Shown here piece after piece: positions 20,131-48,541 of a stretch of 64,000 nt of DNA; positions within the stretch are counted from its first letter, which is position 1, and each line of letters starts with the position of its first letter. Source of the stretch: Macrostomum hystrix. Its lineage: Eukaryota; Animalia; Platyhelminthes. Below the pieces are notes generated by a model. It searched no databases. It worked only from the letters and a program-made list of their open reading frames with translations, and had not been told where the DNA came from. The stretch lies in NCBI GenBank assembly GCA_950097015.1, contig CATNEN010000002.1:7998001-8062000 (forward strand), given 5' to 3'. The translations under genes and the position numbers were made by a program.

Positions 20131-21857
20131 TTTCTATTATACTAAAAATGAAAATCTTGTATGTTTGTTTGCAATCGACTAGCTCCCGAACGGCTCAACC
20201 GATTTTCACAATTCCTTCGCCAAAAGATCACAAATGGGCCGGAATCGGTACACGTAATTTTATTAAGCTTAATTCCATTGGCAAGGGGATTAAATATTCA
20301 AAAAACAGTTTTAAATAGGCTTTTCTAATGCATTCTTGTTTTCAGCTTGTGCACAGTGAGGCCTCCAGTGCCAATTTTAATGATTGCATCAGGGCCAGTT
20401 TTGTTAGGCGAGCGTACTGATAAGAAATTTCTCACCCAAATGTGCATAGCTGTGTCAACCCCACTGGCGAGATAATTATGCCCAATGTGCACAGGCTGAG
20501 CTGGCTTCTGTTAACTGCTGGCAGTGTGATATTTTATTATTTTATTTATTTATTTATTGAGTTTTTGCAATCAAATAGCATATTCACATCATACACCAAA
20601 AGGCTACAGCTGAGAACTGAATTGATCCAAGTGATCGGCCTTTTTCTAGCAGAGCGAAGCGAACCGAACCGAATCCCAGGCACAACAATGACACAGCCAA
20701 ATAGCATAAATACAAATCCAGGCTCAGAATCGATAGATATCTAGGCTGAGCATTGATAGATATCTAGGCTGAGCATTGATAGATATCTAGGCTGAGCATT
20801 GATAGATATCTAGGCTGAGCATTGATAGATATCTAGGCTGAGCATTTATAGATATCTAGGCTCAGCATTGATAGACATCTAGGCTCAACATTTTTATAAA
20901 TATCTAGGCTCAACATTTTTATAGTTATCTAGGCTCAGCATTGACAGATATCTAGGCTGAGCATTGATAGATATCTAGGCTCAGCATTGATAGACATCTA
21001 GGCTCAACATTTTTATAAATATCTAGGCTCAACATTTTTATAGTTATCTAGGCTCAGCATTGATAGACATCTAGGCTCAACATTTTTATAAATATCTAGG
21101 CTCAACATTTTTATAGTTATCTAGGTTCAGCATTGACAGATATCTAGGCTCAGCATTGATAGATATCTAAGCTCAAAATTGATAGATATCTAGGCTCAGC
21201 ATTGATAGATATCTAGGCTGAGCATTGATAGATATCTAGGCTGAGCATTGATAGATATCTAGGCTCAGCATTGATAGACATCTAGGCTCAACATTTTTAT
21301 AAATATCTAGGCTCAACATTTTTATAGTTATCTAGGCTCAGCATTGACAGATATCTAGGCTCAGCATTGATAGATATCTAAGCTCAAAATTGATAGATAT
21401 CTAGGCTCAGCATTGATAGATATCTAGGCTCAGCATTGATAGTTATCTAGGCTCAGCATAGATAGAAGATAGATATCTAGGCTCAACATTTTTATGGATA
21501 TCTAGGCTCAGCATTGAAAGATATCTAGGCTCAGCATTGATAGATATCTAGGCTCAAAATTGATAGATATCTAGGCTCAGCATTGATAGTTATCTAGGCT
21601 CAACATTTTTTATGGATATCTAGGCTCAGCATTGATAGATATCTAGGCTCAGCATAGATAGAAGATAGATATCTAGGCCCAACATTTTTATGGATATCTA
21701 GGCTCAGCATTGAAAGATATCTAGGCTCAGCATTGATAGATATCTAGGCTCAGCATTGATAGATATCTAGGCTCAGCATTGATAGATATCTAGGCTCAGC
21801 ATTGATAGATATCTAGGCTCAGCATTGATAGTTATCTAGGCTCAGCATAGATAGAAT
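20131..21857 (+). mobile_element. Truncated long Helitron (type B) with 23-bp satellite
   Basis: Same 5' arm as type A, diverging after GCCAGTTTTG into TTAGGCGAGCG. Satellite from ~20735, cut by a new TCTAATATAC start at 21858. Confidence 0.85.
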
Positions 21858-23705
21858 CTAATATACTAAATAATATACTAAAAATGAAAATCTTGTATGT
21901 TTGCAATCGACTAGCTCCCGAACGGCTCAACCGATTTTTGCAATTCCTTCGCCAAAAGATCACAAATGGGCCGGAATCGGTACACGTAATTTTATTAAGC
22001 TTAATTCCATTGGCAAGGGGATTAAATATTCGAAAAACAGTTTTAAATAGGCTTTTCTAATGCATTCTTGTTTTCAGCTTGTGCACAGTGAGGCTCCAGT
22101 GCCAATTTTAATGATTGCATCAGAGCCAGTTTTGATAACGAACTGATAAGAACTCACAGGGAGGCTACCCAGAGGGTAGCGAAGGGCAGCTAGTCTTCTT
22201 GTATGTTTGCAATCGACTAGCTCCCGAACGGCTCAACCGATTTTCGCAATTCCTTCGCCAAAAGATCACAAATGGGCCCGAATCGGTACACGTATTTTTA
22301 TTAAGCTTAATTTCATTGCCAAGGGGATTAAATATTCGAAAAACTGTTTTAAATAGGCTTTTCTAATGCATTCTTGTTTTCAGCTTGTGCACAGTGAGGC
22401 TCCAGTGCCAATTTTTATGATTGCATCAGAGCCAGTTTTGATAACGAACTGATAAGAACTCCAGTGAGGCTACCCAGAGGGTAGCGAAGGCAGCTAGTCT
22501 TATTATACTAAAAATGAAAATCTTGCTTGTATGTTTGTTTGCAATCGACTAGCTCCCGAACGGCTCAACCGATTTTCAAAATTCTTTCACTAAAAGATCG
22601 CAATTGGGCCGGAATCGGTACACGTATTTTTATTAAGCTTAATTCCATTGCCAAGGGGATTAAATATTCAAAAAACTGTTTTAAATAGGCTTTTCTAATG
22701 CATTCTTGTTTTCAGCTTGTGCACAGTGAGGCCTCCAGTGCCAAATTTAATGATTGCATCAGAGCCAGTTTTGATAACGCACGCGCGTACTGATAAGAAC
22801 TCACAGGGAGGCTACCCAGAGGGTAGCGAAGGCAGCTAGTCTAATATACTAAAAATGAAAATCTTGCTTGTATGTTTGTTTGCATCTAATATACTAAAAA
22901 TGAAAATCTTGCTTGCTTGCTTGTTTGCAATCGACTAGCTCCCGAACGGCTCAACCGATTTTCAAAATTCTTTCACTAAAAGATCGCAAATGGGCCGGAA
23001 TCGGTACACGTAATTTTATTAAGCTTCTTATATACTAAAAATGAAAATCTTGTTTGTATGTTTGTATGTTTGTATGTTTGCAATCGACTAGCTCCCGAAC
23101 GGCTCAACCGATTTTCAAAATTCCTTCACTAAAAGATCGCAATTGGGCTGGAATCGGTACACGTATTTTTATTAAGCTTAATTTCATTGCCAAGGGGATT
23201 AAATATTCGAAAAACTGTTTTAAATAGGCTTTTCTAATGCATTCTTGTTTTCAGCTTGTGCGCAGTGAGGCTCCAGTGCCAATTTTAATGATTGCATCGG
23301 AGCCAGTTTTGATAACGCACTGATAAGAACTCACAGGGAGGCTACCCAGAGGGTAGCGAAGGCAGCTAGTCTAATATACTAAAAATGAAAATCTTGCTTG
23401 CTTGCTTGTATGTTTGCAATCGACTAGCTCTCGAACGGCTCAACCGATTTTCGCAATTCCTTCGCCAAAAGATCACAAATGGGCCGGAATCGGTACACGT
23501 AATTTTATTAAGCTTAATTCCATTGGCAAGGGGATTAAATATTCGAAAAACAGTTTTAAATAGGCTTTTCTAATGCATTCTTGTTTTCAGCTTGTGCACA
23601 GTGAGGCCTCCAGTGCCAATTTTAATGATTGCATCAGAGCCAGTTTTGATAACGAACTGATAAGAACTCAATGGAGGCTACCCAGAGGGTAGCGAAGGCA
23701 GCTAG
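21858..23705 (+). mobile_element. Tandem array 2 of type-A Helitrons (~5 units plus fragments)
   Basis: Same termini and CTAG|TC junctions; largely a copy of 18.9-20.1 kb. Confidence 0.9.
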
Positions 23706-24324
23706 TTTCTAATATACTAAAAATGAAAATCTTGCTTGCTTGCTTGCTTGCTTGTATGTTTGCAATCGACTAGCTCCCGAACGGCTCAACCGATTTTCGC
23801 AATTCCTTCGCCAAAAGATCACAAATGGGCCGGAATCGGTACACGTAATTTTATTAAGCTTAATTCCATTGCCAAGGGGATTAAATATTCGAAAAACTGT
23901 TTTAAATAGGCTTTTCTAATGCATTCTTGTTTTCAGCTTGTGCACAGTGAGGCTCCAGTGCCAATTTTTAATGATTGCATCAGGGCCAGTTTTGTTAGGC
24001 GAGCGTACTGATAAGAAATTTCTCACCCAAATGTGCATAGCTGTGTCAACCCCACTGGCGAGATAATTACTGCCCAATGTGCACAGGCTGAGCTGGCTTC
24101 TGTTAACTGCTGGCAGTGTGATATTTTATTATTTTATTTATTTATTTATTGAGTTTTTTTCAATCAAATAGCATATTCACATCATACACCAAAAGGCTAC
24201 AGCTGAGAACTGAATTGATCCAAGTGATCGGCCTTTTTCTAGCAGAGCGAAGCGAACCGAACCGAATCCCAGGCACAACAATGACACAGCCAAATAGCAT
24301 AAATACAAATCCAGGCTCAGAATC

Positions 24325-26840
24325 GATAGATATCTAGGCTGAGCATTGATAGATATCTAGGCTGAGCATTGATAGATATCTAGGCTCAGCATTGATAGAC
24401 ATCTAGGCTCAACATTTTTATTAAATATCTAGGCTCAACATTTTTATAGTTATCTAGGCTCAGCATTGACAGATATCTAGGCTCAGCATTGATAGATATC
24501 TAGGCTCAAAATTGATAGATATCTAGGCTCAACATTTTTATAGTTATCTAGGCTCAGCATTGACAGATATCTAGGCTCAGCATTTTTATGGATATCTAGG
24601 CTCAGCATTGAAAGATATCTAGGCTCAGCATTGATATATATCTAGGCTCAGCATTGATAGATATCTAGGCTCAGCATTGATAGATATCTAGGCTCAGCAT
24701 TGATAGTTATCTAGGCTCAGCATTGATAGTTATCTCGGCTCAGCATTGAAAGTTATCTAGGCTCAACATTTTTGTAGATAACTAAGCTCAGCATTGATAG
24801 TTATCTAGGCACGGCATTGATAGTTATCTAGGCTCAGCATTGATAGTTATCTAGGCTCAGCATTGATAGTTATCTAGGCTCAGCATTGACAGTTATCTCG
24901 GCTCAGCTTTGATAGTTATCTAGGCATGGCATTGATAGTTATCTAGGCTCAGTATTGATAGTTATCTAGGCTCAGCATTGATAGTTATCTAGGCTCAGCA
25001 TTGATAGTTATCTAGGCTCAGAATTGATAGTTATCTAGGCTCAGCATTGATAGTTATCTAGGCTCAGTATTGATAGTTATCTAGGCTCAGCATTGATAGT
25101 TATCTAGGCTGAGCATTGATAGATATCTAGGCTGAGCATTGATAGATATCTAGGCTCAGCATTGATAGACATCTAGGCTCAACATTTTTATTAAATATCT
25201 AGGCTCAACATTTTTATAGTTATCTAGGCTCAGCATTGACAGATATCTAGGCTCAGCATTGATAGATATCTAGGCTCAAAATTGATAGATATCTAGGCTC
25301 AACATTTTTATAGTTATCTAGGCTCAGCATTGACAGATATCTAGGCTCAGCATTTTTATGGATATCTAGGCTCAGCATTGAAAGATATCTAGGCTCAGCA
25401 TTGATATATATCTAGGCTCAGCATTGATAGATATCTAGGCTCAGCATTGATAGATATCTAGGCTCAGCATTGATAGATATCTAGGCTCAGCATTGATAGT
25501 TATCTAGGCTCAGCATAGATAGAAGATAGATATCTAGGCTCAACATTTTTATGGATATCTAGGCTCAGCATTGAAAGATATCTAGGCTCAGCATTGATAG
25601 ATATCTAAAGGCTCAGCATTGATAGATATCTAGGCTCAGCATTGATAGATATCTAGGCTCAGCATTGATAGATATCTAGGCTCAGCATTGATAGATATCT
25701 AGGCTCAGCATTGATAGATATCTAGGCTCAGCATTGATAGTTATCTAGGCTCAGCATAGATAGAAGATAGATATCTAGGCTCAACATTTTTATGGATATC
25801 TAGGCTCAAAATTGATAGATATCTAGGCATAACATTTTTATAGTTATCTAGGCTCAGCATTGACAGATATCTAGGCTCAGCATTTTTATGGATATCTAGG
25901 CTCAGCATTGAAAGATATCTAGGCTCAGCATTGATATATATCTAGGCTCAGCATTGATAGATATCTAGGCTCAGCATTGATAGATATCTAGGCTCAGCAT
26001 TGATAGATATCTAGGCTCAGCATTGATAGATATCTAGGCTCAGCATTGATAGTTATCTAGGCTCAGCATAGATAGAAGATAGATATCTAGGCTCAACATT
26101 TTTATGGATATCTAGGCTCAGCATTGAAAGATATCTAGGCTCAGCATTGATAGATATCTAAAGGCTCAGCATTGATAGATATCTAGGCTCAGCATTGATA
26201 GATATCTAGGCTCAGCATTGATAGATATCTAGGCTCATCATTGATAGATATCTAGGCTCAGCATTGATAGTTATCTAGGCTCAACATTTTTTATGATTAT
26301 CTAGGCTCAGCATTGATAGATTTCTAGGCTCAGCATTGATAGTTATCTAGCCTCAGCATTGATAGTTATCTAGGCTCAACATTTTTTATAGATATCTAGG
26401 CTCAACATTTTTATAGATATCTAGGCTCAACATTTTATAGATATCTAGGCTCAGCATTGATAGTTATCTAGGCTCAGTATTGAAAGATATCTAGGCTCAA
26501 CATTTTTTATAGATATCTAGGCTCAACATTTTTATAGATATCTAGGCTCAGCATTGATAGTTATCGAGGCTCAGAATCGATAGAAATCTAGGCTTAGCAT
26601 TGATAGTTATCGAGGCTCAGAATCGATAGAAATCTAGGCTCAGAATCGATACATATCTAAGCTCAGAATCAATTGAAATCAAGGCTCAGAATACACGTAT
26701 AGATGTCTAAGCTCAGAATTGAAAGATATCTAAGCCCAGAAGCGATTGAAATCTAGGCTGAGAATCGATGGGTATCTAGGCACAGAATCGATTGAAATCT
26801 AGGCTCAGAAATTAGAATTGATAGATACATAGGCTCCGAA
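24325..26840. repeat. 23-bp satellite, B family (ATTGATAGATATCTAGGCTCAGC)
   Basis: About 100 tandem units with variants and degenerate edges. Contains palindrome TAGATATCTA. Confidence 0.97.
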
Positions 26841-27437
26841 TTTGTAAATATACAATGATATTTATTTAAGACAATAATGACTGATTCGAAAGCACAGCAC
26901 TGTCAGATTTCAAGGCACAACAGTGACATACAAGTTTCATCAAGACTCAAGACTATCATCGTGTGGTAATCGGTCAGTGGACGCATTTTTTCACATCAAT
27001 TTAGAGTTGAGAGTTTAGAGACGTGAAAGGCCTTTGAGATAACTTAGACGCTATCATATTGAAATTTGGGCGCACTGGCCTACCCAATCCAAGTCCTTAC
27101 CGGCTATTCTAGGCTGGCGCAGGCAATGTACATTATTCCCCCTCTTGCCCCCAAATGTGCACGCACGGGCTGGAGAGCCCTCACCCCATTCCATCGGTTT
27201 TTAAGATTTCAAGCGGTCAGAGGTCCGTTTTATCGATTTTTACCCTAGGTCTTAAGATAATATCCGATTCAGCCCACTGTGATGATATATAGCTTGCAAA
27301 TTAGTGTGGTTTATAAAGGCTCCTTATCTGATTCTTCAGACATCGAAATTCAAATCCAAATTTCACAACCTATCTCTCTTTCAAGCCTTTCATTATCTCT
27401 CAACTTATCATTTCATTTTACTTTTCAGTTCTCAATC

Positions 27438-30400
27438 ATGGTTCGACGCGGCGCAAGCAGTTTGAAGAAAAGTCGCGATGCCAAGCGACGGCGACAAGCT
27501 GAATCCGAGGCCGATCGCGAGGTCCGTTTGGAAGAACGACGTCAGCGAATGGCTGAGAAGCGAGCCTCTCAAACTGAGGCAGAGCGAGCTGCCCGACTGG
27601 AGGAACAGCGGCAGCGGATCGCTGAGCGCAGAGATGTCGAGACTGAGGCAGAGCGAGCTGCCCGACTGGAGGAACAGCGGCAGCGGGATGCTCAGCGCAG
27701 AGATGCTGAGACTGAGGCAGAGCGAGCTGCCCGACTGGAGGAACAGCGGCAGCGGGATGCTCAGCGCAGAGATGCTGAGACTGAGGCAGAGCGAGCTGCC
27801 CGACTGGAGGAACAGCGGCAGCGGGATGCTCAGCGCAGAGATGCTGAGACTGAGGCAGAGCGAGCTGCCCGACTGGAGGAACAGCGGCAGCGGGATGCTC
27901 AGCGCAGAGATGCTGAGACTGAGGCAGAGCGAGCTGCCCGACTGGAGGAACAGCAGCAGCGGGATGCTCAGCGCAGAGATGCTGAGACTGAGGCAGAGCG
28001 AGCTGCCCGACTGGAGGAACAGCAGCAGCGGGATGCTCAGCGCAGAGATGCTGAGACTGAGGCAGAGCGGGCTGCCCGACTGGAAGCCGAGCAGATTCGT
28101 CGCCGTGGAGCTTTGGTTTCCAAGTGAGTTTTATGAGGCTCTATAAAATAACGTTACATAACATAATTATGGTTTTATTTAGTTTTTTTCTAAATCGCCT
28201 CATAAGTGTTGATTTTTTTGCTGTAGATTTGAGTAACTTAACCTGCAGTCCAACAATTGGTTTAAAAATTCTGTAAATGCAGCTGTGCTTTATTTTCACT
28301 GCATTGCCAACTTAGGTCGGACACCCAGCAGCAAGGTATGGAAGCTATTGTACCATTTGAGCAGTTGCAGGTAATCCCTATTATTGGTGATGGCAATTGC
28401 TTCTTTTATGCTGTGTGTGATCAGCTGCGTGGAACCCCGCTAGAAACTGACGCAGCCTCCTTGCGGCAGGATTTGTCTTGCCGTGTTGCAGAACTCATGC
28501 CACAGTTGGTTGCAGATGGCCTCATCGCACCTGAGAGTGCTGATGACATTGTGAGTTCCTCTTTTCAAACAGGCACTTATGTTTCAGACGAAGTTGCCTC
28601 TTTGTTGAGCCGCTGCTTTAATGTGGACCTGGTCATTTACCAGGCCAATGGTAATGTGATGCAGTATTTCAGGGCTAATCTCTATCCTCCTAATGCGATT
28701 GTGCGCGTGCTCTTGCGCCATGAGCATTACGAGTCACTGAGACTTCGAGAGCCTTTGCAAGCCCTTTCAGATGCAGAGTTTCCAAGCTTGGCAGCAAGCA
28801 AAACTCCTGCCAAGAGGGCCAAGAAAGCCAAGGGCCCGAGAGCGATGCCAGCTGACAGCCCCAGCTCATGTGCTGACACTGGAGCACAGGCTGAGCAGAT
28901 GTGAGTAACTTGCTTTTGTTATTTTGCATTTATTCGTTTAAATCAGTTTAATCTGCTGACACAAATAAATCACTAGCATGGAAAGCAATGTCAATCAAAT
29001 CAATGTACCCTCTTAATAAACTCTGCTCAACCCCTACTCAAACCCTGCTCACAGGCATGCCGAGCCGGTGATGCCAGAAGCCCCGGCTCACCAATGCGGC
29101 CCAATGAACCGCGCCTGCAATGACTGCGGCGCCCTGCTGTGGGCCAAGGAGACGAGCAATTTCTGCTGCGCCAAGGGCAAGGTGAAGCTGCCCACCCGTT
29201 CCATGCCGCAGGTCCTGGCAGATCTGTACACGGGGCAGCACCGCCTCAGTGCAGAGTTCCTGGCTAACATCAGGAGCTACAACTCTGTGCTGCACCTGAC
29301 ATCTCTGGGTGCGAGGCTCAGACTGGTGCCTGGCTGGAGTCCCAGCTTCATCATCAGCGGCCAGCTGCATCACAACTTGGGGCCGCTGCTTGCCGACACC
29401 TCAGCCGTGCCGCATGGCTGGCAGGTGTACTTCACGGACCGCGAGCTGGAGAGCCGCCTGAGCCTCAGCCAGAAGGTGAAGCCGGAGCTGCTGGAGCTGC
29501 TGCAAACTGTGCTGCACGAGTGCAACGGCTATGTGCAGAGCCTGCGAGCTGCTGCTCAGCGGATCAGTGGCGACCCTGAGCTGGGAGATGCGCGAATTGT
29601 GATTCACCCGGACCGACGACCAGCTGGGGAGCACATTCGGTGAGTGAGCTGTGTTATGGAGCTGCTGGTTGGGATCCTATTTCGCCTGCACTTATACTGT
29701 TCAGTCTGTGCAGTTGATTCTGTGAAGTACCTGCTGTACCAATTCCATTCCTGTTCATTCCCAGGCGTTACAATCTCCCTACTGCCAATGAGGTTGGCAT
29801 CCTGGTTGTCGGTGGTTCCGAGGACGCACCGACAAGCCGTGACGTTGTGATTCGACTGCGCGGAGGCGAAGTCCAGCGCATATCCGAGACCCACCGGTCC
29901 TACGACCCTCTGGAGTACGTGCTGCTGTTCCCGAATGGCGAGGACGGCTGGCACCCAGAGCTGCAGATGGCGAATGGGCGGAAGCTGACGCCCATGAAGT
30001 ACTACGCCAGCGAAATCATGGTGCGAGCTGGCCAGTTCAACGTGCTGCACCACGGCAGGCGCCTCTTCCAGCAGTACCTGGTTGACATGGCTGCCAAGAT
30101 CGAGTCCGAGAGGCTGCTGTACCTGCGCACTCATCAGAACGACCTGCGCAGCGAGACCTACAGCGGCCTGCGAGACGCTCTGTTCGCTGCTGATGGCAGG
30201 AGCACCGAGAGAGACCCCAATGAGATTGGTAAGCCTGCCCATGTGTACCTGTCTTCCAGCTTTGTAGGTGGACCCAGGTACCTGATGGAGCGGCTGCAAG
30301 ATGCAATGGCCTACGTGCACAAGTTCGGCAAGCCGGACCTGTTTGTCACAGCCACATGCAACCCGAAGTGGCCGGAAATCAGCGTGCAGCTGCTGCCCGG

Positions 30401-33400: not shown

Positions 33401-33745
33401 ATCCTGGAGCTGGGCGAGAATGTGCTGCGCTGCAAAGTCGCTGCCGGCCAGTTCACTGGAGATGAGATCCTGCTGCCGCGGATTCCACTGGAGCCCAACA
33501 ATGCTGACCTGCCAGTCTGCTTCAAGCGGCTGCAGTTCCCAGTCAAGCCGAGCTTCTGCCTGACGATCCACAAGTCGCAGGGCCAGTCGCTCGACACCGT
33601 GGGCATCGACCTAGCTGTCGGCTGCTTCGCCCACGGCCAGCTGTACACGGCGCTGTCCCGGGCCAAGAATGTCGACAGCGTGCGCGTCCGGATCTCCGGT
33701 GAGCGGACGAGAAATGTCGTGTACCCTGAGGTGCTGAGTGACTGA
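27438..33745 (+). CDS. Helitron RepHel transposase, 9 exons, 1808 aa: STPR repeats, OTU protease, Cys-rich zinc finger, HUH Rep, PIF1-like helicase
   Basis: Exons 27438-28123, 28316-28900, 29055-29639, 29765-30534, 30622-30964, 31034-31313, 31414-32435, 32513-32909, 32987-33745. All introns GT-AG and frame-preserving, 5427 nt. OTU GDGNCFFYAV/HEHY; ZnF CNDC...FCC; Rep FVTATCNPKW, EYQKRGLPHVH, KYVIKY; helicase APAGTGKTF, WDEISM, GDFRQLLPV, TIHKSQGQSL, HGQLYTALSR. Confidence 0.93.
27500..28095 (+). repeat. 69-bp coding repeat encoding 23-aa STPR-type units (~9 copies)
   Basis: ETEAERAARLEEQRQRDAQRRDA repeats. The 23-residue period and E-T-x-E-x-R-x-x-R-L pattern match the STPR domain of FMBP-1-like proteins. 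Confidence 0.85.
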
Positions 33746-33990
33746 ACCTCGGTATCACAAGTTGAGCCACCTGATATGTAAATGGTGTTTAACACCATGG
33801 GCCCATGGAAGGCATATCAGTTCAAATCCTGTTACAGTGGCACTAAAAACCTTAAAAACAAGTGCACCACCATAGTTAAAGCCATTTAGTCAGATTATTA
33901 CCAGCCAAAATCTGAAGCATATAAAAACTAGCACCTAAAATATAACAATTTTCGTTAAAGACAATTCAGTGCAGATATATTATGGCTAAA

Positions 33991-37135: not shown

Positions 37136-40100
37136 TCTTCTTGTATGTTTGCAATCGACTAGCTCCCGAACGGCTCAACCGATTTTCGCAATTCCTTCGC
37201 CAAAAGATCACAAATGGGCCCGAATCGGTACACGTATTTTTATTAAGCTTAATTTCATTGCCAAGGGGATTAAATATTCGAAAAACTGTTTTAAATAGGC
37301 TTTTCTAATGCATTCTTGTTTTCAGCTTGTGCACAGTGAGGCCTCCAGTGCCAAATTTAATGATTGCATCAAAGCCAGTTTTGTTAGGCGAGCGTACTGA
37401 TAAGGAATTTCTCACCCAAATGTGCATAGCTGTGTCAACCCCACTGGCGAGATAATTACTGCCCAATGTGCACAGGCTGAGCTGGCTTCTGTTATCTGTT
37501 CGGCACTGAGATATTTTTTTATTTTTATATATTGAGTTTTATTCAAACTCATTTAGCAGATATAGCAGATTTCAATTATAGCAGATTCATTCACATCACA
37601 GCATACTCCAAAGGCAACAGCTGAGAACTGAATTGATTCAAGTGATCGGCCTTTCTTGGCAGCAAGTAACATTTGTTGATAATACTTGCTTACTTACTTG
37701 CTTACTTGCTTACTTACTTGCAAAAGCATTGATAGATATCTAGGCTTAGAATTAATATTAATAGATTCCTAGGCTCCGAATCGATCCATATCTAGGCTCA
37801 ACATTCTTATAGATTTCTAGGCTCAACATTTTTATAGAGATCTAGGCACAGCATTGATAGTTATCTATGCTCAACATTTTTATAGATATCTAGGCACAGC
37901 ATCAATTGTTATCTAGGCTCAGCTTTGATATTTCTCTAGGCTCAGCATTGATAGTTATCTAGGCTCAGCATTGATAGTTATCTAGGCTCAGAATTAATAG
38001 TTATCTAGGCTCAGCATTGATAGTTATCTAGGCTCAGCATTGATAGTTATCTAGGCTCAGCATTGATAGTTATCTAGGCTCAGCATTGATAGTTATCTAG
38101 GCTCAGCATTGATAGTCATCTAGGCTCAGCATTGATAGTTATCTAGGCTCAGCATTGATAGTTATCTAGGCTCAGCATTGATAGTTATCTAGGCTCAGCA
38201 TTGATAGTTATCTAGGCTCAGCATTGATAGTTATCTAGGCTCAGCATTGATAGTTATCTAGGCTCAACATTTTTATAGATAACTAGGCCCAGAATTGATA
38301 GTTATCTAGGCCCAGAATTGATAGTTATCTAGGCCCAGAATTGATAGTTATCTAGGCTCAGAATTGATAGTTATCTAGGCTCAGAATTGATAGTTATCTA
38401 GGCTCAGAATTGATAGTTATCTAGGCCCAGAATTGATAGTTATCTAGGTTCAGCATTGATAGTTATCTAGGCTCAGCATTGATAGTTATCTAGGCTCAGC
38501 ATTGATAGTCATCTAGGCTCAGCATTGATAGTTATCTAGGCTCAGCGTGATAGTTATCTAGGCTCAACATTTTTATAGATATCAAGGCTTGGCGTGAAAG
38601 TTATCTAGGCTCAACATTTTTATAGATATCAAGGCTCAGCATTGATAGTTATCTAGGCTCAGCATTGATAGTTATCTAGGCTCAGCATTGATAGTTATCT
38701 AGGATCAGCATCGATTGTTATCCAGCCTTAGCATTGATAGTTATCTAGGCTCAACATTTTTATAGATATTAAGGCTCAGCGTGGTAGTCATCTAGGCTCA
38801 ACAGTTTTATAGATAACTAGGCTCAGCATTGATAAGTATCTAGGCTCAACATTTTTATAGATAACTAGGCCCAGAATTGATAGTTATCTAGGCTCAGCAT
38901 TGATAGTTATCTAGGCTCAGCATTGATAGTTATCTAGGCTCAGCATTGATAGTTATCTAGGCTCAGCATTGATAGTTATCTAGGCTCAGCATTGATAGTT
39001 ATCTAGGCTCAGCATTGATAGTTATCTAGGCTCAGCATTGATAGTTATCTAGGCTCAACATTTTTATAGATAACTAGGCCCAGAATTGATAGTTATCTAG
39101 GCCCAGAATTGATAGTTATCTAGGCCCAGAATTGATAGTTATCTAGGCTCAGAATTGATAGTTATCTAGGGTAGAATTGATAGTTATCTATGCCCAGAAT
39201 TGATAGTTATCTAGGCCCAGAATTGATAGTTATCTAGGCCCAGAATTGATAGTTATCTAGGCCCAGAATTGATAGTTATCTAGGCCCAGAATTGATAGTT
39301 ATCTAGGCTCAGAATTGATAGTCATCTAGGCCCAGAATTGATGGTTATCTAGGCCCAGAATTGATAGTTATCTAGGCCCAGAATTGATAGTTATCTAGGC
39401 CCAGAATTGATAGTTATCTAGGCCCAGAATTGATAGTTATCTAGGCTCAGAATTGATAGTTATCTAGGCCCAGAAGTGATAGTTATCTAGGCTCAGAATT
39501 GATAGTTATCTAGGCTCAGAATTGATAGTTATCTAAGCTCAGAATTGATAGTTATCTAGGCTCAGCATTGATAGTTATCTAGGCTCAGCATTGATAGTTA
39601 ACTAGGCTCAGCATTAATAGTTATCTAGGCTCAGCATTGATAGTTATCTAGGCTCAGCATTGATAGTTATCTAGGCTCAGCATTGATAGTTATCTAGGCT
39701 CAGCATTGATAGTTATCTAGGCTCAGCATTGATAGTTATCTAGGCTCAGCATTGATAGTTATCTAGGCTCAGCATTGATAGTTATCTAGGCTCAACATTT
39801 TTATAGATAACTAGGCCCAGAATTGATAGTTATCTAGGCCCAGAATTGATAGTTATCTAGGCCCAGAATTGATAGTTATCTAGGCCCAGAATTGATAGTT
39901 ATCTAGGCTCAGAATTGATAGTTATCTAGGGTAGAATTGATAGTTATCTATGCCCAGAATTGATAGTTATCTAGGCCCAGAATTGATAGTTATCTAGGCC
40001 CAGAATTGATAGTTATCTAGGCCCAGAATTGATAGTTATCTAGGCCCAGAATTGATAGTTATCTAGGCTCAGAATTGATAGTCATCTAGGCCCAGAATTG

Positions 40101-42214
40101 ATAGTTATCTAGGCCCAGAATTGATAGTTATCTAGGCCCAGAATTGATAGTTATCTAGGCTCAGAATTGATAGTTATCTAGGCCCAGAATTGATAGTTAT
40201 CTAGGCCCAGAATTGATAGTTATCTATGCCCAGAATTGATAGTTATCTAGGCCCAGAATTGATAGTTATCTAGGCTCAACATTGATACATATCTAGGCTC
40301 AACATTTTTATAGATATCAAGGCTTGGCGTGAAAGTTATCTAGGCTCAACATTTTTATAGATATCTTGGCTCGGCATTGATAGTTATCTAGGCTCAGCAT
40401 TGATAGTGAACTAGGCTCAGCATTGATAGTTATCTAGGCTCAGCATTGATAGTTATCTAGGCTCAGCATTGATAGTTATCTAGGATCAGCATCGATTGTT
40501 ATCCAGCCTTAGCATTGATAGTTATCTAGGCTCAACATTTTTATAGATATTAAGGCTCAGCGTGGTAGTCATCGAGGCTCAACAGTTTTATAGATAACTA
40601 GGCTCAGCATTGATAAGTATCTAGGCTCAACATTTTTATAGATGTCAAGGCTCAGCATTGATAGTTATCTAGGCTCAGCATTGATAGTTATCTAGGCTCA
40701 ACATTTTTATAGATGTCAAGGCTCAGCATTGATAGTTATCTAGGCTCAGCGTGATAGTTATCTAGGCTCAACATTTTTATAGATATCTAGGCTCAGCATT
40801 GATAGTTATCTAGGCTCAGCATTGATAGTTATCTAGGCTCAGCATTGATAGTCATCTAGGCTCAGCATTGATAGTTATCTAAAAGGCTCAGCATTGATAG
40901 TTATCTAGGCTCAACATTGATACATATCTAGGCTAAACATTTTTATAGATATGAAGGCTCAGCGTGATAGTTATCTAGGCTCAGCATTGATAGTTATCTA
41001 GGCTCAGCGTGATAGTTATCTAGGCTCAACATTTTTATAGATATCAAGGCTTGGCGTGAAAGTTATCTAGGCTCAACATTTTTATAGATATCAAGGCTCA
41101 GCATTGATAGTTATCTAGGCTCAGCATTGATAGTTATCTAGGCTCAGCATTGATAGTTATCTAGGATCAGCATCGATTGTTATCCAGCCTTAGCATTGAT
41201 AGTTATCTAGGCTCAACATTTTTATAGATATTAAGGCTCAGCGTGGTAGTCATCTAGGCTCAACAGTTTTATAGATAACTAGGCTTAGCATTGATAAGTA
41301 TCTAGGCTCAACATTTTTATAGATGTCAAGGCTCAGCATTGATAGTTATCTAGGCTCAGCATTGATAGTTATCTAGGCTCAACATTTTTATAGATATTAA
41401 GGCTCAGCGTGATAGTTATCTAGGCTCAACATTTTTATAGATATCTAGGCTCAGCATTGATAGTTATCTAGGCTCAGCATTGATAGTTATCTAGGCTCAG
41501 CATTGATAGTGATCTAGGCTCAGCATTGATAGATATGTAGGCTCAACATTTTTATAGATATTAAGGCTCAGCGTGATAGTTATCTAGGCTCAGCATTGAT
41601 AGTTATCTAGGCTCAGCATTGATAGATATCTAGGCTCAACATTTTTATAGATATTAAAGCTCAGCGTGATAGTTTTCTAGGCTCAACATTTTTATAGATA
41701 TCTTGGCTCGGCATTGATAGTTACCTAGGCTTAAAATTTTTATAGATAACTAGACACAGCATTGTTATTTATCTAGGCTTAGAATTGATAGATTCCTGGG
41801 CTCAACATTTTTATAGATATCTCGGCTCAGCACTGGTAGATATCTAGGCTCAGAATGGATAGATATCGTACTTTAGATTTGATAGATATCTACATAACTT
41901 CATTGGTTAAAAATCGATAGAAATTAAATCTCAGAATCGATAGATATTGAAGCTCAGAATTTATACTCGTGGAAATCTAAGGTCAGAATTGATAGAATTC
42001 TAAGCTCAGAATTGATAGAAATCTTGGCTCAGCACGGGTAGATATCTAGGCTCAGTGTTGATAGATATTTAGGCTCCAAATCGATAGAAAGTTAAGCTCA
42101 GAATCAATAGATATCTTCGTTCAGAGTTGATATCTATTGACTTACTAAATACTGTTTTATTATTGTAAAGTTGCCTTCAAGCTAAGGTCCCCAAAGGGGG
42201 GCCTACATTGCTAG
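37136..42214 (+). mobile_element. Non-autonomous long Helitron, type B (~5.1 kb)
   Basis: Type-A-like 5' arm (lacking its first ~25 bp), B-specific arm, 23-bp satellite. 3' end AGGTCCCC-AAA-GGGGGGCCT-ACATTG-CTAG at 42214, followed by TC. Confidence 0.88.
37725..42150. repeat. 23-bp satellite, B family (ATTGATAGTTATCTAGGCTCAGC / ...GGCCCAGA)
   Basis: About 190 tandem units in homogenised sub-blocks. Confidence 0.97.
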
Positions 42215-43986
42215 TCTTCTTCTAATATACTAAAAATGAAAATCTTGCTTCTAATATACTAAAAATGAAAATCTTGTTTGTATGTTTGTATGTTTGTATG
42301 TTTGCAATCGACTAGCTCCCGAACGGCTCAACCGATTTTCGCAATTCCTTCGCCAAAAGATCACAAATGGGCCGGAATCGGTACACGTATTTTTATTAAG
42401 CTTAATTCCATTGGCAAGGGGATTAAATATTCGAAAAACAGTTTTAAATAGGCTTTTCTAATGCATTCTTGTTTTCAGCTTGTGCACAGTGAGGCCTCCA
42501 GTGCCAATTTTAATGATTGCATCAGAGCCAGTTTTGATAACGCACGCGCGTTCTGATAAGAACTCACAGGGAGGCTACCCAGAGGGTAGCGAAGGCAGCT
42601 AGTCTTCTAATATACTAAAAATGAAAATCTTGTTTGTATGTTTGTATGTTTGTATGTTTGCAATCGACTAGCTCCCGAACGGCTCAACCGATTTTCGCAA
42701 TTCCTTCGCCAAAAGATCACAAATGGGCCGGAATCGGTACACGTATTTTTATTAAGCTTAATTCCATTGGCAAGGGGATTAAATATTCGAAAAACAGTTT
42801 TAAATAGGCTTTTCTAATGCATTCTTGTTTTCAGCTTGTGCACAGTGAGGCCTCCAGTGCCAATTTTAATGATTGCATCAGAGCCAGTTTTGATAACGCA
42901 CGCGCGTTCTGATAAGAACTCACAGGGAGGCTACCCAGAGGGTAGCGAAGGCAGCTAGTCTATTATACTAAAAATGAAAATCTTGTATGTTTGTTTGCAA
43001 TCGACTAGCTCCCGAACGGCTCAACCGATTTTCACAATTCCTTCGCCAAAAGATCACAAATGGGCCGGAATCGGTACACGTATATTTATTAAGCTTAATT
43101 CCATTGCCAAGGGGATTAAATATTCGAAAAACAGTTTTAAATAGGCTTTTCTAATGCATTCTTGTTTTCAGCTTGTGCACAGTGAGGCTCCAGTGCCAAT
43201 TTTTATGATTGCATCAGAGCCAGTTTTGATAACGAACTGATAAGAACTCCAGTGAGGCTACCCAGAGGGTAGCGAAGGCAGCTAGTCTAATATACTAAAA
43301 ATGAAAATCTTGCTTGCTTGTATGTTTGCAATCGACTAGCTCCCGAACGGCTCAACCGATTTTCAAAATTCTTTCACTAAAAGATCGCAATTGGGCCGGA
43401 ATCGGTACACGTATTTTTAATAAGCTTAATTCCATTGCCAAGGGGATTAAATATTCGAAAAACTGTTTTAAATAGGCTTTTCTAATGCATTCTTGTTTTC
43501 AGCTTGTGCACAGTGAGGCTCCAGTGCCAACTTTAATGATTGCATCAGAGCCAGTTTTGATAACGAACTGATAAGAACTCCAGTGAGGCTACCCAGAGGG
43601 TAGCGAAGGCAGCTAGTCTTAATATACTAAAAATGAAAATCTTGCTTGCTTCTATTATACTAAAAATGAAAATCTTGCTTGCTTGCTTGTATGTTTGCAA
43701 TCGACTAGCTCCCGAACGGCTTAACCGATTTTCACAATTCCTTCGCCAAAAGATCACAATTGGGCCGGAATCGGTACACGTAATTTTATTAAGCTTAATT
43801 CCATTGCCAAGGGGATTAAATATTCGAAAAACAGTTTTAAATAGGCTTTTCTAATGCATTCTTGTTTACAGCTTGTGCACAGTGAGGCCTCCAGTGCCAA
43901 TTTTAATGATTGCATCAGAGCCAGTTTTGATAACGAACTGATAAGAACTCCAGTGAGGCTACCCAGAGGGTAGCGAAGGCAGCTAG
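42215..43986 (+). mobile_element. Tandem array 4 of type-A Helitrons (5 units plus 5' fragments)
   Basis: CTAG ends at about 42602, 42958, 43286, 43616 and 43986. Confidence 0.9.
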
Positions 43987-44627
43987 TCCACTATACTAAA
44001 AATGAAATGGTTGGTTGGTTGGTTGGTTGGTTGGTTGTAATTGATTTTCTCCCGAACGGCTCAACCGATTTTCACCATTTCTTCACCAAAAGATGCCAAA
44101 TATGGGGACAATTATACACGTATTTTTATTAAGCTTAACTTTATTGCTAAAGGGATTAAATATTCGAAAAACATGATTTTTTCAAAGGTCAAACCATCTT
44201 GGCCTATTGAGAATTTCACTCACTGCCACTGAATTGAAATTGCATCGTCAAATTGCGCAACAACCCCTAGCTGATTGAATTTGAAGCCTGCACTCTGGAG
44301 ACAAATTGGAAATAAATGTACACAACCAACCGCGAGACTGAGTGTACTCTATTTTCTTACTTCATTGTACAAAGCCAGAACTTTGAGAATTCATTTTATA
44401 AGGCTGATTTCTGCACCCACTAACCAACAGTCGGAATAGCCGATGTGTTAGGCACTAGGAATAAGTTAGGCATGGCTAGGCTTCGATTCTGCACTGCGTC
44501 AAATCATTTAGACTAATTTTCAGCCAGTAGTGATTGAAGATTATTTTTATTTATTTTTTTCATTTCGTTAATAAAATATCATAAATCATAGCAAATCTGA
44601 GTTTGAATCATTGCAACAATAGAGTCT

Positions 44628-46330
44628 GAATCATGGCTAAACCAGAGTCTGAAACATGACTAAACCAGAGTTTAAATCATGGCTAAACCAGAGTCTGAAT
44701 CATGGCTAAACCAGAGTTTGAATCATGGCTAAACCAGAGTCTGAATCATGGCTAAACCAGAGTTTGAATCATGGCTAAACCAGAGTTTGAATCATGACTA
44801 AACCAGCGTTTGAATCATGGCTAAACCAACGTTTAAATCATGGCTAACCTAGAGTCTGAATCATGGCTAAACCAGAGTCTGAATCATGGCTAAACCAGAG
44901 TCAGAATCATGGCTAAACCAGAGTTTGAATCATGGCTAAACCAGAGTTTCAATCATGGCTAAACCAGCGTCTGAATCATGGCTAAACCAGAGTTTGAATC
45001 ATGGCTTAACCAGAGTTTGAATCATGGCTAAACCAGAGTTTGAATCATGGCTAAACCAGAGTCTGAATCATGGCTAAACCAGAGTCTGAATCATGGCTAA
45101 GCCAACGTTTGAATCATGGCTAACCTAGAGTCTGAATCATGGCTAAACCAGAGTTTGAATCATGGCTTAACCAGAGTTTGAATCATGGCTAAACCAGCGT
45201 CTGAATCATGGCTAAACCAGAGTTTGAATCATGGCTTAACCAGAGTTTGAATCATGGCTAAACCAGAGTCTGAATCATGGCTAAACCAGAGTCTGAATCA
45301 TGGCTAAGCCAACGTTTGAATCATGGCTAACCTAGAGTCTGAATCATGGCTAAACCAGAGTCTGAATCATGGCTAAACCAGAGTTTCAATCATGGCTAAA
45401 CCAGAGTCTGAATCATGGCTAAACCAGAGTCTGAATCATGGCTAAGCCAACGTTTGAATCATGGCTAACCTAGAGTCTGAATAATGGCTTAACCAGAGTT
45501 TGAATCATGGCTTAACCAGAGTTTGAATCATGGCTAAACCAGCGTCTGAATCATGGCTAAACCAGAGTTTGAATCATGGCTTAACCAGAGTTTGAATCAT
45601 GGCTAAACCAGAGTCTGAATCATGGCTAAACCAGAGTCTGAATCATGGCTAAGCCAACGTTTGAATCATGGCTAACCTAGAGTCTGAATCATGGCTAAAC
45701 CAGAGTCTGAATCATGGCTAAACCAGAGTTTGAATCATGGCTAAACCAGAGTCTGAATCATGGCTAAACCAGAGTCTGAATCATGGCTAAGCCAACGTTT
45801 GAATCATGGCTAACCTAGAGTCTGAATCATGGCTAAACCAGAGTTTGAATCATGGCTTAACCAGAGTTTGAATCATGGCTAAACCAGCGTCTGAATCATG
45901 GCTAAACCAGAGTTTGAATCATGGCTTAACCAGAGTTTGAATCATGGCTAAACCAGAGTTTGAATCATGGCTAAACCAGAGTCTGAATCATGGCTAAACC
46001 AGAGTCTGAATCATGGCTAAGCCAACGTTTGAATCATGGCTAACCTAGAGTCTGAATCATGGCTAAACCAGAGTCTGAATCATGGCTAAACCAGAGTTTG
46101 AATCATGGCTAAACCAGAGTCTGAATCATGGCTAAACCAGAGTCTGAATCATGGCTAAGCCAACGTTTGAATCATGGCTAACCTAGAGTCTGAATAATGG
46201 CTTAACCAGAGTTTGAATCAAGGCGAAACCAGAGTTTGAATCATGGCTAAATTAGAGTTTGAATCATGGTAAAACGAGAGTTTGAATCATAGCCCACCAG
46301 GGTTTAAAACATGGCGAAACCTGAGTTTGA
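44628..46330. repeat. 23-bp satellite, C family (TTTGAATCATGGCTAAACCAGAG)
   Basis: About 74 tandem units. Confidence 0.97.
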
Positions 46331-46344
46331 ATCTTGGCTAACCC

Positions 46345-48445
46345 AGCGTTTGAAAAATCAACGTCAACTGGGGAGTCATCATCAAAATGGGGATCAAGGT
46401 AAACTGGGGGATAATCGTCAACTGGAGGATCTTGGTAAACTGGGGGATAATTGTCAACTGGGGGATCATTGTCAACTGGGGGATCGTTGTGAACTGGGGG
46501 ATCATTGTCAACTAGGGGGTAATGGTCAACTGGGGGATAATTGTCAACTGGGGAATCATCATAAAATGGGGGATCATGGTCAACTTGGGGATCATTGTCA
46601 ACTGGGGGATCATTGTCAACTGTGGGATCATTGTCAACTGGGGGATCATTGTCAAATGAGGGATCATTGTCAACTGGGGGATCTTTGTCAACTGGGGGTT
46701 CATTGTCAACTGTGGGATCATTGTCAACCGGCGGGATCATTGTCAACTGTGGGATCATTGTCAACTGGGGGATCATTGTCAACTGGGGGATCATTGTCAA
46801 GTGGGTGATCATCGTCAACTGGGGGATCATTGTCAACTGGGGGATCTTTGTTAACTGGGTGTTCATTGTCAACTGGGGGAACATTGTCAACTGGAGGAAC
46901 ATTTTTAACTGGGGATCATCATCAATGGTGAGACTTCATCAACTGGGGATCATTGTGAACTGGGGGATCTTTGTTAACTGGGGGATTATTGTCAACTGGG
47001 GGATCATTCTCAACTGGGGGATCATTGTCAACTGTGGGATCATTGTCAACCGGCGGGATCATTGTCAACTGTGGGATCATTGTCAACTGGGGGATCATTG
47101 TCAACTGGGGGATCATTGTCAAGTGGGTGATCATCGTCAACTGGGGGATCATTGTCAACTGGGGGATCTTTGTTAACTGGGTGTTCATTGTCAACTGGGG
47201 GATCATTGTCAACTGGAGGAACATTGTTAACTAGGGATCATCATCAATGGGGAGACTTCATCAACTGGGGGATCATTGTGAACTGGGGAATCTTTGTTAA
47301 CTGGGGGATCATTGTCAACTGGGGGATCATTCTCAACTGGGGGATCATTGTCAACTGGGGGATCATTTTCAACTGGGGGATTATTGTCAACTGGGGGAAC
47401 ATTGTCAACTGGAGGAACATTTTTAACTGGGGATCATCATCAATGGTGAGACTTCATCAACTGGGGATCATTGTGAACTGGGGGATCTTTGTTAACTGGG
47501 GGATTATTGTCAACTGGGGGATCATTCTCAACTGGGGGATCATTGTCAACTGGGTGATCATTCTCAACTGGAGGATCATTGTCAACTGGGGGATCATTGT
47601 CAACTGGGGGGAATTGTGTTCAACTGGGGGATCATTGTCAACTGGGGGATCATTGTAAACTGGGGTATCATTGTCAACTGGGGGATCATTGTCAACTGGG
47701 GGATCATTCTCAACTGGGGGATCATTGTCAACTGGGGGATCATTTTCAACTGGGGGATCATCATCAACTGGGGGATCATCATCAACCGGCGGGATCATTG
47801 TCAACTGGGGGATCATTGTCAACTGGGGGATCATTGTCAACTTGGGGATCATTGTCAACTGGGGGATCATTGTCAACTGGGGGATCATTCTCAACTGGGG
47901 GATCATTCTCAACTGGGGGATCATTGTCAACTGGGGGGAATTGTGTTCAACTGGGGGATCATTGTGAACTGGGGGATCTTTGTTAACTGGGGGATCATTG
48001 TGAACTGGGGGATCTTTGTTAACTGGGTGATCATCATCAACTGGGGGATTATTGTCAACTGGGGGAACATTGTCAACTGGAGGAACATTTTTAACTGGGG
48101 ATCATCATCAATGGTGAGACTTCATCAACTGGGGATCATTGTGAACTGGGGGATCTTTGTTAACTGGGGGATTATTGTCAACTGGGGGATCATTCTCAAC
48201 TGGGGGATCATTGTCAACTGGGGGGTCATTTTCAACTGGGGGATCATTGTCAACTGGGGGATCATTCTCAACTGGGGGATCATTCTCAACTGGGGGATCA
48301 TTCTCAACTGGGGGATCATTCTCAACTGGGGGATCATTGTCAACTAGGGGATCGTTGTCAACTGGGGGTTCATTGTCAACTGGGGGTTCATTGTCAACTG
48401 GGGGATCATTGTCAACTGGGGGATCATTGTCAACTGTGGGTTCAT
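46345..48445. repeat. 18-bp satellite (GGGGGATCATTGTCAACT)
   Basis: About 115 tandem units; source of the NWGIIV/QLTMIP/VDNDPP spurious ORFs. Confidence 0.97.
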
Positions 48446-48541
48446 TGTAGCTTTAAAAAGCTGTAAATTCAGCTGCTAAAAAGTATATACTAGACGAATT
48501 AAAAGTACTTCTGCTCCCCGAAGGGGGGCAAAACTTGCTAG

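Follow-up and report, generated by a model that had tools for sequence, protein, structure and literature searches.

A same-strand train of canonical Helitrons carrying short tandem repeat arrays in Macrostomum hystrix

Layout of the locus

We analysed a window of 64,000 nucleotides from Macrostomum hystrix (contig CATNEN010000002.1, forward strand). From 14.5 to 64 kb it is occupied by a single same-strand, head-to-tail train of canonical Helitrons, with the Helitron signature of 5'-TC, a hairpin, CTAG-3' and an A|T target. The train contains about 40 mini-units of approximately 335 bp (type A), a 3'-truncated autonomous copy encoding the RepHel transposase, one element of type B and two of type C, and arrays of 23-bp and 18-bp repeats are located within these elements. 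The 50-kb block, which has the look of satellite DNA, is thus made of related rolling-circle elements, some of them with short tandem repeats. At its head the train adjoins non-Helitron DNA (...GGAA|TC, 14525). The features are as follows.

14525-20130, + strand: train of A mini-Helitrons, about 335 bp each, including a 1008-bp higher-order repeat
20096-20130, + strand: example of an A-type 3' terminus (7-bp stem, 3-nt loop, 8 nt, CTAG)
20131-21860, + strand: 3'-truncated duplicate of the autonomous 5' part, with no 3' end
21861-23705, + strand: A units that separate the truncated duplicate from the autonomous copy
23706-36121, + strand: autonomous Helitron of lineage Ia, 3'-truncated
36156-37135, + strand: A units, one 5'-truncated and two complete
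37136-42214, + strand: B, a non-autonomous element
42215-43986, + strand: train of A units
43987-48541, + strand: C, copy 1
48542-49872, + strand: four A units, including the mosaic unit 49216-49549
49873-64000, + strand: C, copy 2, continuing to window-equivalent position 64355

The first A train (14525-20130) contains short 5'-end fragments, after which it restarts. Several 5' fragments of 35-140 bp, each followed by a fresh complete 5' tip, are present in the window, and 41 5' tips against 34 3' ends make a modest 5' excess. The upstream 14 kb of the window also contains an LTR retrotransposon. The initial annotation placed all long satellites of the window inside the elements; this holds for the 23-bp and 18-bp arrays, but two arrays in the upstream 14 kb, of 1.1 kb (2911-4019) and 0.5 kb (5349-5846), lie outside Helitrons. 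It also took the element starting at 20131 for a B element, whereas this is the truncated duplicate listed above, formed by an a-type arm, an internal region of type Ia (99% identical) and an array of the 23-bp type 23a (20716-21860).

Autonomous copies and non-autonomous elements

The autonomous copy of the window starts with an arm (23706-23994) and an internal region (to 24308), followed by a 23a array (24309-26808), the RepHel exons (27438-33745), a 75-bp repeat (33985-34664) and a 247-bp repeat (34926-36121). It has no 3' end of its own and breaks off within the 247-bp array at 36121. Exon-by-exon protein searches detected the domains Helitron_like_N (E-value 3.5e-47), PIF1 (5.6e-37 and 8.4e-20) and Pif1_2B (1.3e-16) at 29.8-33.7 kb, and the fusion of Rep (HUH) to a Pif1-type helicase is that of a canonical Helitron. 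Autonomous Helentrons encode an AP-endonuclease domain; among nine forward-strand ORFs, each of at least 123 aa, at 27.3-33.7 kb, no endonuclease family was found. At its N-terminus the transposase carries STPR repeats of 23 residues, which belong to a DNA-binding repeat family.

At least two autonomous lineages are present. Lineage I is represented by eight copies that are approximately 100% identical and one at 98%, and the RepHel of lineage II is 92-93% identical to it; further RepHel families occur at 73-82% identity. The one transposase assumed in the initial annotation is therefore not supported. The layout of the autonomous elements is common to both lineages: a TC tip, a microsatellite, an arm of about 300 bp, a lineage-specific short-period array (23-bp in lineage I, 21-bp in lineage II), an intron-containing RepHel gene and a hairpin 7-8 nt before CTAG. 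In lineage I, further repeats lie downstream of the RepHel gene. Five other autonomous copies of lineage I end in GCTCCCC-AAA-GGGGGGC, then ACAAATTG and CTAG, which is the B-type hairpin. Lineage II combines a c-type arm, the 21-bp array and an exact C terminus.

The arm of B is of the a type and lacks 23 nt at the 5' tip. The element further has an internal region of type Ib that is 98% identical to the autonomous copy c38c, a 23a array (approximately 37725-42132) and a 3' tail with hairpin and CTAG (42185-42214) that reads GGTCCCC-AAA-GGGGGGCC, TACATTG, CTAG. It matches sublineage Ib in both the internal region and the 3' end. A genome-wide search with the B and autonomous-I terminus variants gave 13 exact matches.

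In C copy 1, a c-type arm (43987-44150) and a private internal region (to 44583) are followed by an array of another 23-bp type, 23b (44584-46354), an 18-bp array (46363-48448) and a 3' tail (48449-48541) that contains GCTCCCC-GAA-GGGGGGC, then AAAACTTG and CTAG. In C copy 2 the 23b array occupies 50899-55684, and the 18-bp array extends from 55684 beyond the end of the window. This copy carries a nested A unit with a partial A (50391-50835), inserted at an A|T site (...AAATCA|T) that is empty in C copy 1. C matches lineage II in the 5' arm and the last 65 bp or so, and has a private body with two arrays. Since this internal region and these arrays are missing from lineage II, C is not a simple deletion derivative. 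The boundaries of B and C are reproduced at many independent loci.

The A units consist of the first 300 bp or so of the lineage-I 5' region and a 35-nt terminus. In the window there are 41 copies of the 5' motif TATACTAAAAATGAAAATCTTG and 30 of the 3' end GCTACCC-AGA-GGGTAGC-GAAGGCAG-CTAG, all on the + strand, with none expected by chance. The ends of A, B and C (the latter two at 42214 and 48541) are thus exactly those described initially. Genome-wide there are 383 exact A termini, and 95 of the first 100 listed sit in runs of about 330-bp period in few regions; much of the A copy number may therefore stem from unequal exchange rather than transposition. Many of the runs lie on the window's own contig. 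No autonomous element with an exact A-type terminus was found among the fetched copies. Short A units exist with either arm: the unit 49216-49549 joins a c-type arm to an A-type 3' end, and thus is a mosaic.

Termini, arms and arrays

DNA folding places a 7-8-bp stem at the same position in A, B, C and the autonomous copy. The common 3' design is a 7-8-bp stem, a 3-4-nt loop, 7-8 nt and CTAG; the distance from the end of the stem to the final base is 10-12 nt in A, B, C and autonomous I, which is typical of canonical Helitrons. One stem pair shows a compensatory change, with both sides altered. The A hairpin agrees in register with the other termini in 15-16 of 29 positions, a level equalled by 24-76 of 20000 shuffles. 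A derivation of the A 3' end from the autonomous internal region was also considered. MAFFT matched it to AAGGCTAC...CAGAGCGAAGCG with a long gap and approximately 70% matches, and this origin is unconvincing given the gap-free, in-register match to the other termini. To judge from the alignments, the A-type and CCCC-type ends, initially regarded as two classes of terminus, are in-register variants of one hairpin design.

All element ends read CTAG. The next base is T in all 96 junctions, and TC follows in 88 of them; at exact C-type termini genome-wide T is next in 324 of 326. The true host flanks form a small sample, in which four 5' flanks have A as their last base (window 14524, c31, c38c, c1b) and two train-end 3' flanks begin with T (c39, c1b). 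Insertion between A and T without target duplication is characteristic of canonical Helitrons. Comparison of the first 60 with the last 80 nt gave inverted matches of at most 5-7 nt, which do not exceed those of shuffled sequences. The elements thus have no terminal inverted repeats, again as in canonical Helitrons, and do not show the 11-12-bp subterminal inverted repeats of Helentrons.

The initial 16 nt do not vary among A, B, C and both autonomous lineages; a microsatellite and some 200 bp of homologous sequence follow in all of them. The microsatellite is formed by (CTTG)n, (TGGT)n or TGTTTGTA repeats, beyond which lie the 23-, 21- or 18-bp arrays. The homologous arm supports the original proposal of one Helitron family complex with shared 5' ends, although C shares only the first 200 bp or so. 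Two haplotypes, a and c, exist for the first part of the arm (75% identity between them, 94-99% within each), and two, Ia and Ib, for the internal region (76% between, 98% within); all four combinations of arm and internal region were observed. Segments of the 5' arm have been shuffled between neighbouring elements, and the exchange documented in this way lies within the 5' arm, not at the 3' end.

These data bear on a reading close to the initial one, namely that there is one 5' arm, that short and long forms have swapped two unrelated classes of 3' end, and that a single transposase serves them all. It would account for the mosaic short units with a c-type arm and an A-type end, and for the A arm being 96-99% identical to autonomous I while the last 29 nt before CTAG match it at only 55%. 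However, for B as well as for C there is an autonomous partner that it matches at both ends, B having the hairpin of autonomous I, and C the arm and 3' tail of autonomous II. Stem and loop lengths, spacer and register are common to the termini, and one stem pair has changed on both sides; two RepHel lineages and more distant families coexist; and the exchange is seen in the arm. We consider this reading rather unlikely. The modular shuffling that it shares with the initial annotation does stand for the arm and internal region, but not for B and C as end-swapped forms.

Genome-wide, 661 candidate 18-bp arrays and 74 candidate 23a arrays were counted, together with 605 tails and 430 internal regions of C. 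Array flanks were checked in best-scoring samples, among the matches listed: a C terminus was found on the same strand within 400 bp downstream of nine out of ten 18-bp arrays on contigs C1-C3, and the 5' internal region within 1 kb upstream of 17 of the 21 23a arrays checked. Among 326 C termini, 139 are followed by another 5' end of the family, and thus more than half border other DNA. In agreement with the initial suggestion that the satellites are internal to the elements and spread by them, the 18-bp and 23-bp arrays appear, from their flanks, to travel inside elements to hundreds and tens of loci respectively.

In three lineages an array of 21-23-bp period lies in the same orientation 0.5-0.7 kb from the 5' end, with unrelated monomers. 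The best rotation of 23a against 23b gives 12 of 23 matches, reached by 579 of 2000 shuffles; the best monomer pair, 23b against the 21-bp unit, is reached by 66 of 2000 shuffles and is not significant across six comparisons. Among autonomous copies with an approximately 100% identical RepHel region, the array length varies four-fold, from 538 to 2508 bp.

Origin of the block and known systems

The block is likely to be a young complex in which canonical Helitrons have accumulated head to tail. The RepHel protein would nick the conserved 5' tip, unwind toward the 3' end and stop at the hairpin with CTAG. Recognition probably depends on hairpin shape and position and not on sequence, in which case A, B and C would all be moved in trans. 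Unequal exchange and new insertions at, or next to, the ends of resident elements may have lengthened the train, and the mosaics may have arisen by homologous recombination or by template switching between neighbours in the train.

Another possibility is that the block arose mainly by unequal crossing-over and segmental duplication, the Helitron ends being passively carried with little transposition. Such processes have left traces: the 1008-bp higher-order repeat in the A array, the duplication of 19270-20700 at 22845-24290, the recurrence some 45 kb downstream of the layout of truncated 5' fragment, A units and autonomous copy, a 12.1-kb tandem duplicate in C38, and the occurrence of A termini mostly in runs. 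On the other hand, C termini are found on many contigs, almost invariably before T and more than half of them without a family neighbour; the A|T junctions are precise, and the nested insertion has a paralogous empty site; and the nearly identical autonomous copies adjoin A arrays of differing unit lengths. Little transposition is thus improbable as an explanation of the block.

It is still less probable that the 21-23-bp arrays are working parts fixed near the 5' end, for instance binding arrays for the STPR repeats, and not cargo. Their constant place and orientation in three lineages despite unrelated monomers, and the STPR repeats at the start of the transposase, speak for such a role, but A has no array and yet 383 exact termini, array length varies four-fold among copies with identical genes, the STPR repeats of lineages I and II are 83-84% identical while their arrays share nothing, and in the HINEs of oyster, for which no such function has been demonstrated, related flanks likewise enclose central repeats that are unrelated (PMC7492417). 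Equally doubtful is a more specific form, in which iteron-like arrays load or titrate the transposase via STPR and array turnover would drive the splitting of Helitron lineages.

Returning to the complex of canonical Helitrons, it is a clear example of a kind of system known from oysters, flies, nematodes and plants, and no new principle is involved. Helraiser-type Helitrons reportedly have a conserved 5' end, tolerate variation of the 3' hairpin and form chimeric families. The elements of M. hystrix resemble them in the conserved 5' end, the variable 3' hairpin and the chimeras, but their 3' variants keep one geometry and the demonstrated exchange is in the 5' arm. Canonical Helitrons with flexible 3' ends were described by Grabundzija et al. 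2016, as cited in PMC12628747.

The closest precedent comes from the Pacific oyster, whose Cg_HINE elements are non-autonomous Helentrons (Vojvoda Zeljko et al. 2020, PMC7492417). Both of their flanks are conserved, the left one contains a microsatellite, and a satellite-like array lies centrally in a fixed orientation. As in M. hystrix, there are one or two consecutive arrays per element, related flanks enclose unrelated repeats, and the elements disperse the arrays genome-wide. The combined architecture, in which any novelty would lie according to the initial annotation, has thus been published for the oyster and is reviewed in PMC12628747. However, Cg_HINE has subterminal inverted repeats of the Helentron type, whereas the M. 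hystrix elements have none and are bounded by TC...CTAG at an A|T target; moreover, in M. hystrix the autonomous copies themselves bear arrays. The left-flank microsatellite and central tandem repeats are a resemblance in layout to Helentrons and HINEs, not membership.

A similar situation is that of the rolling-circle DINE-1 and DINE-TR1 elements of Drosophila, whose central tandem repeats are reported to expand to satellite-like arrays (Thomas et al. 2014; Dias et al. 2015, as cited in PMC12628747). They differ from the M. hystrix elements in repeat periods and in host group, and the DINE-1 lineage is associated with Helentrons. Tandem Helitron arrays formed by rolling-circle amplification (Xiong, Dooner and Du 2016, summarised in the same review) and Helitron-associated centromeric arrays of Meloidogyne (PMC13404089) are likewise head-to-tail, with autonomous and non-autonomous elements interleaved with tandem repeats; they have more 5' than 3' ends, an excess that is modest in the M. 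hystrix window. As far as these accounts describe them, the M. hystrix train differs in mixing several subfamilies and in its precise CTAG|TC junctions, and it is not known to be linked to a centromere.

The locus gives an unusually complete view of one Helitron family, with live-looking autonomous copies, derivatives and arrays all found across a few hundred kilobases. The stem pair changed on both sides makes it a natural covariation test of the 3' hairpin, and the arm haplotypes provide direct sequence evidence of recombination of 5' arms between neighbours in a train. With nine out of ten arrays on contigs C1-C3 so flanked, the 18-bp satellite of about 660 loci appears to be essentially Helitron-borne. 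The locus is well suited to transposition assays on hairpin recognition.

Composition of the window

The window belongs to a 220-Mb eukaryotic assembly. Its left part is occupied by a retrotransposon and two tandem arrays.

Features of the left part of the window
Within 1-14.5 kb, + strand: Ty3/gypsy-type LTR retrotransposon, forward ORFs at 7194-12610 with zinc knuckle, aspartyl protease, RT, RNase H and integrase matches
2911-4019, open in both strands: GC-rich 72/252-bp array upstream of the retrotransposon
5349-5846: 40-bp array upstream of the retrotransposon

The rest of the window, from 14525 on, consists entirely of + strand elements of one Helitron family complex. Counts in the window are 41 for the 22-nt 5' motif and 30 for the 29-nt 3' end of the mini-Helitron A, with a chance expectation of none in both cases. 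The A units were called by Tandem Repeats Finder as a 328-356-bp "satellite". The same program lists the 23-bp, second 23-bp and 18-bp arrays (below, 23a, 23b and 18) reported in the initial annotation, whose 3' ends of the long elements B (42214) and C (48541) are exact.

Several 5' ends have "stutters": a 5' arm fragment of 35-140 bp gives way to a new, complete 5' tip (TCTAA/TCTTA plus TATAC), and the missing remainder of the fragment does not recur downstream.

Positions of 5'-end stutters
Window, + strand: 19270-19460
Window, + strand: 22845-23035
Window, + strand: 42226-42260
Window, + strand: 49873-49900
Copy c2a: 2292-2410
Copy c25: 2289-2360

This fits arrays amplified by rolling-circle copying, in which 5' ends outnumber 3' ends, the outcome of the model of Xiong et al. 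as it is summarised in a 2025 review (PMC12628747).

Autonomous lineages and the long elements

The gene of the Rep-helicase transposase, RepHel, indeed lies at 27.4-33.7 kb, spread over successive forward ORFs with STPR, Helitron_like_N, PIF1 and Pif1_2B matches, the protein searches having been run on separate exons without joining. Genome-wide, the gene region is about 100% identical at eight loci, 98% identical at one, 92-93% at three and 73-82% at many more. Decay as the cause of the broken reading frame is ruled out by the near-identical copies, and the interruptions thus reflect exon structure. Eleven other autonomous copies were fetched with about 18 kb around each and their landmarks mapped; flanks at the sequence level are those of these eleven loci. 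At its N-terminus the transposase is built of STPR repeats, each of 23 residues, with about seven in autonomous lineage I and about four in lineage II (window 27438-28124 versus 5958-6368 of locus L022). The repeats of the two lineages are 83-84% identical, with an A-to-D and a D-to-E difference recurring in each repeat.

In five copies of lineage I (c38a, c38b, c39, c31, c38c) the 247-bp repeat is followed by a unique tail of about 260 bp ending in GCTCCCC-AAA-GGGGGGC, ACAAATTG and CTAG, and then directly by TC of the next element. The 3' end of lineage I, as seen in these copies, is the B-type end. B had been proposed to be an end-swapped derivative. This is not borne out: with the B-type end present on autonomous copies, B is simply one of their non-autonomous relatives, and its internal region shares 98% identity with that of c38c but only 76% with that of the window autonomous copy. 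The latter has no unique 3' tail; it breaks off at 36121, within the 247-bp array, and 34 nt connect it to a 5'-truncated A unit. The element at 20131, which is 99% identical to the 5' part of the window copy and has no 3' end, is a truncated duplicate of that part.

Lineage II comprises c1a, c38d and c1b, with RepHel 92-93% identical. In the 83 bp that follow the microsatellite, its 5' arm is 95-96% identical to that of C, and in c1b the last 65 bp or so match the C tail, the terminal 28 nt being identical. In the position of the 23-bp array of lineage I there is a 21-bp array (unit CAGTATTCTAAATGTGTTTAC, 17-30 copies).

Lineage II loci with the 21-bp array
L021: C1:2.78 Mb
L022: C38:33.09 Mb
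L023: C1:16.48 Mb

Downstream of RepHel, these loci contain an (ACAG)n tract and a CAG-rich stretch that resembles coding sequence. The 434-bp internal region of C and both C arrays are absent from c1a, c38d and c1b. With arm and tail matched in lineage II and the interior absent there, C shares both ends with this lineage and has a body of its own.

All five kinds of 3' ends (A, B, C, autonomous I and autonomous II), aligned from CTAG, have an identical layout: a 7-8-bp stem, a 3-4-nt loop, a 7-8-nt spacer and CTAG. The initial annotation distinguished two classes of ends; the A and CCCC sequences do differ, but they follow one layout in register rather than forming separate classes. With CTAG excluded, the A terminus matches the others without gaps at 15-16 of 29 positions, a value reached by 24-76 of 20000 shuffles. 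At the fourth stem pair the CCCC type has C-G where A has A-T, a change on both sides, and the adjacent T·G wobble of the CCCC type is replaced by T-A in A. We read the 3' ends as variants of one terminator design. The likeness of A to the other ends may be due to descent or to constraint.

Array turnover, arm exchange and junctions

No significant similarity was observed among the four monomers (23a, 23b, 21 and 18). The 23a array varies from 538 to 2508 bp, and the 75-bp repeat region from 310 to 685 bp, among autonomous copies whose genes are about 100% identical. In the repeats after the RepHel stop codon (window 33985-36121), otherwise identical elements differ in copy number, the 75-bp unit being present 3-9 times and the 247-bp unit from about 2.5 times to more than 10. 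The 23b and 18-bp arrays span 1.8 and 2.1 kb in C copy 1, and 4.8 and more than 8.3 kb in C copy 2. Thus array length changes faster than point mutations accumulate. Unequal exchange also seems to have shaped the train: there is a 1008-bp higher-order repeat, 19270-20700 recurs as a duplicate at 22845-24290, the layout is found in similar form some 45 kb farther downstream, and contig C38 has a tandem duplicate of 12.1 kb.

The 83 bp after the microsatellite have two haplotypes, a and c (75% identical between, 94-99% within), and so does the internal region, Ia and Ib (76% between, 98% within). All four combinations are found.

Arm and internal haplotypes
Window autonomous copy: arm a, internal Ia
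c31 (RepHel about 100% identical): arm c, internal Ia
c38c: arm c, internal Ib
Window B: arm a, internal Ib

Recurrent mutation is ruled out by about 20 differences per segment, and the segments must, on this comparison, have recombined. Head-to-tail neighbours with common arms would be an obvious substrate; template switching during rolling-circle copying is an alternative. Both arms are also seen on short A-type units, such as window 49216-49549 and several units of c31 and c38c.

The base after CTAG is T in all 96 junctions from the window and loci L013-L034, and TC follows in 88. The filler between CTAG and TATAC varies by TCT/TCTA steps; most often it is TCTAA (36 times), then TCTTA, TCTAT, TCTTCTAA, TCTTCTTCTAA, TCTATCTAA and others. 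Longer filler stacks stand at some train heads, e.g. TCTTCTATCTTCTAA in c31. At the borders of trains with other DNA, A is the last base of the left flank in four cases, and T the first base of the right flank in two. An A unit with a partial A is inserted in C copy 2 between ...GCGTCAAATCA and T, the same site being empty in C copy 1; at the right-hand joint the unit is truncated and 27 bp of C sequence are lost. No subterminal inverted repeats are present at the element ends. The elements are canonical Helitrons, not Helentrons; the left-flank microsatellite followed by a central array, as in HINE elements, is a likeness of layout, not membership.

At c38a 2480-2505 (contig C38), upstream of an autonomous copy, a 23a array runs into ...GGCTCAGCATTGCTAG, followed by TC, without a hairpin. 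The last 23a monomer supplies the end CATTGCTAG, like the B terminus CATTGCTAG. Here a terminator may have formed from a monomer, or a deletion may have occurred.

Genome-wide distribution and known systems

Genome-wide checks used coordinates and exact counts, and the array samples were the best-scoring matches rather than random ones. The exact C-type terminus occurs 326 times (reversed control, 0) and is followed by T in 324 cases. A family 5' tip lies within 12 nt after 139 of these ends, in most cases TCCAC, which marks another C, or TCTAA/TCTTA, of the A or autonomous-I type; thus over half of them adjoin other DNA. A first look gave 661 candidates with the 18-bp array, 605 with the C tail and 430 with the internal region of C. 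Terminus coordinates are known for contigs C1-C3; there, nine of ten 18-bp arrays are followed on the same strand, at a distance of no more than 400 bp, by a C terminus. Another eight loci have the internal region of C on the same strand as the array, 2.5-8 kb upstream of it. The 23a array has only 74 candidates. The B/autonomous internal region was found at most 1 kb upstream of 17 of the 21 distinct 23a arrays (40 of 112 internal-region candidates scored). Seven 23a arrays have a B-type or autonomous-type terminus downstream, by an IUPAC pattern over known variants, in one case 11.6 kb past the last listed array match. In these best-scoring samples Helitron flanks thus accompany the arrays, and independent loci reproduce the B and C boundaries, so that the outcomes which the initial annotation said would refute it were not observed. 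The exact A terminus occurs 383 times; among the first 100 listed, 95 are in runs of about 330 bp, which often adjoin B or autonomous copies, and the other five are solitary.

Conserved ends with central satellite-like arrays are common in Helitron and Helentron elements (PMC12628747). The oyster Cg_HINE elements are described as having unique combinations of flanks and central satellite-like repeats in one or two consecutive arrays, some with related flanks and unrelated repeats (PMC7492417). In Meloidogyne centromeric clusters, autonomous and non-autonomous Helitrons are interleaved with tandem arrays (PMC13404089). Our literature search for Helitron and Macrostomum found no paper on Helitrons of this genus. 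The observation is sound and the locus instructive, the architecture being of an already described kind. Three findings are of some value in their own right: each long form is paired with an autonomous lineage of its own, the 3' hairpin covaries, and the four haplotype combinations are evidence for arm exchange.
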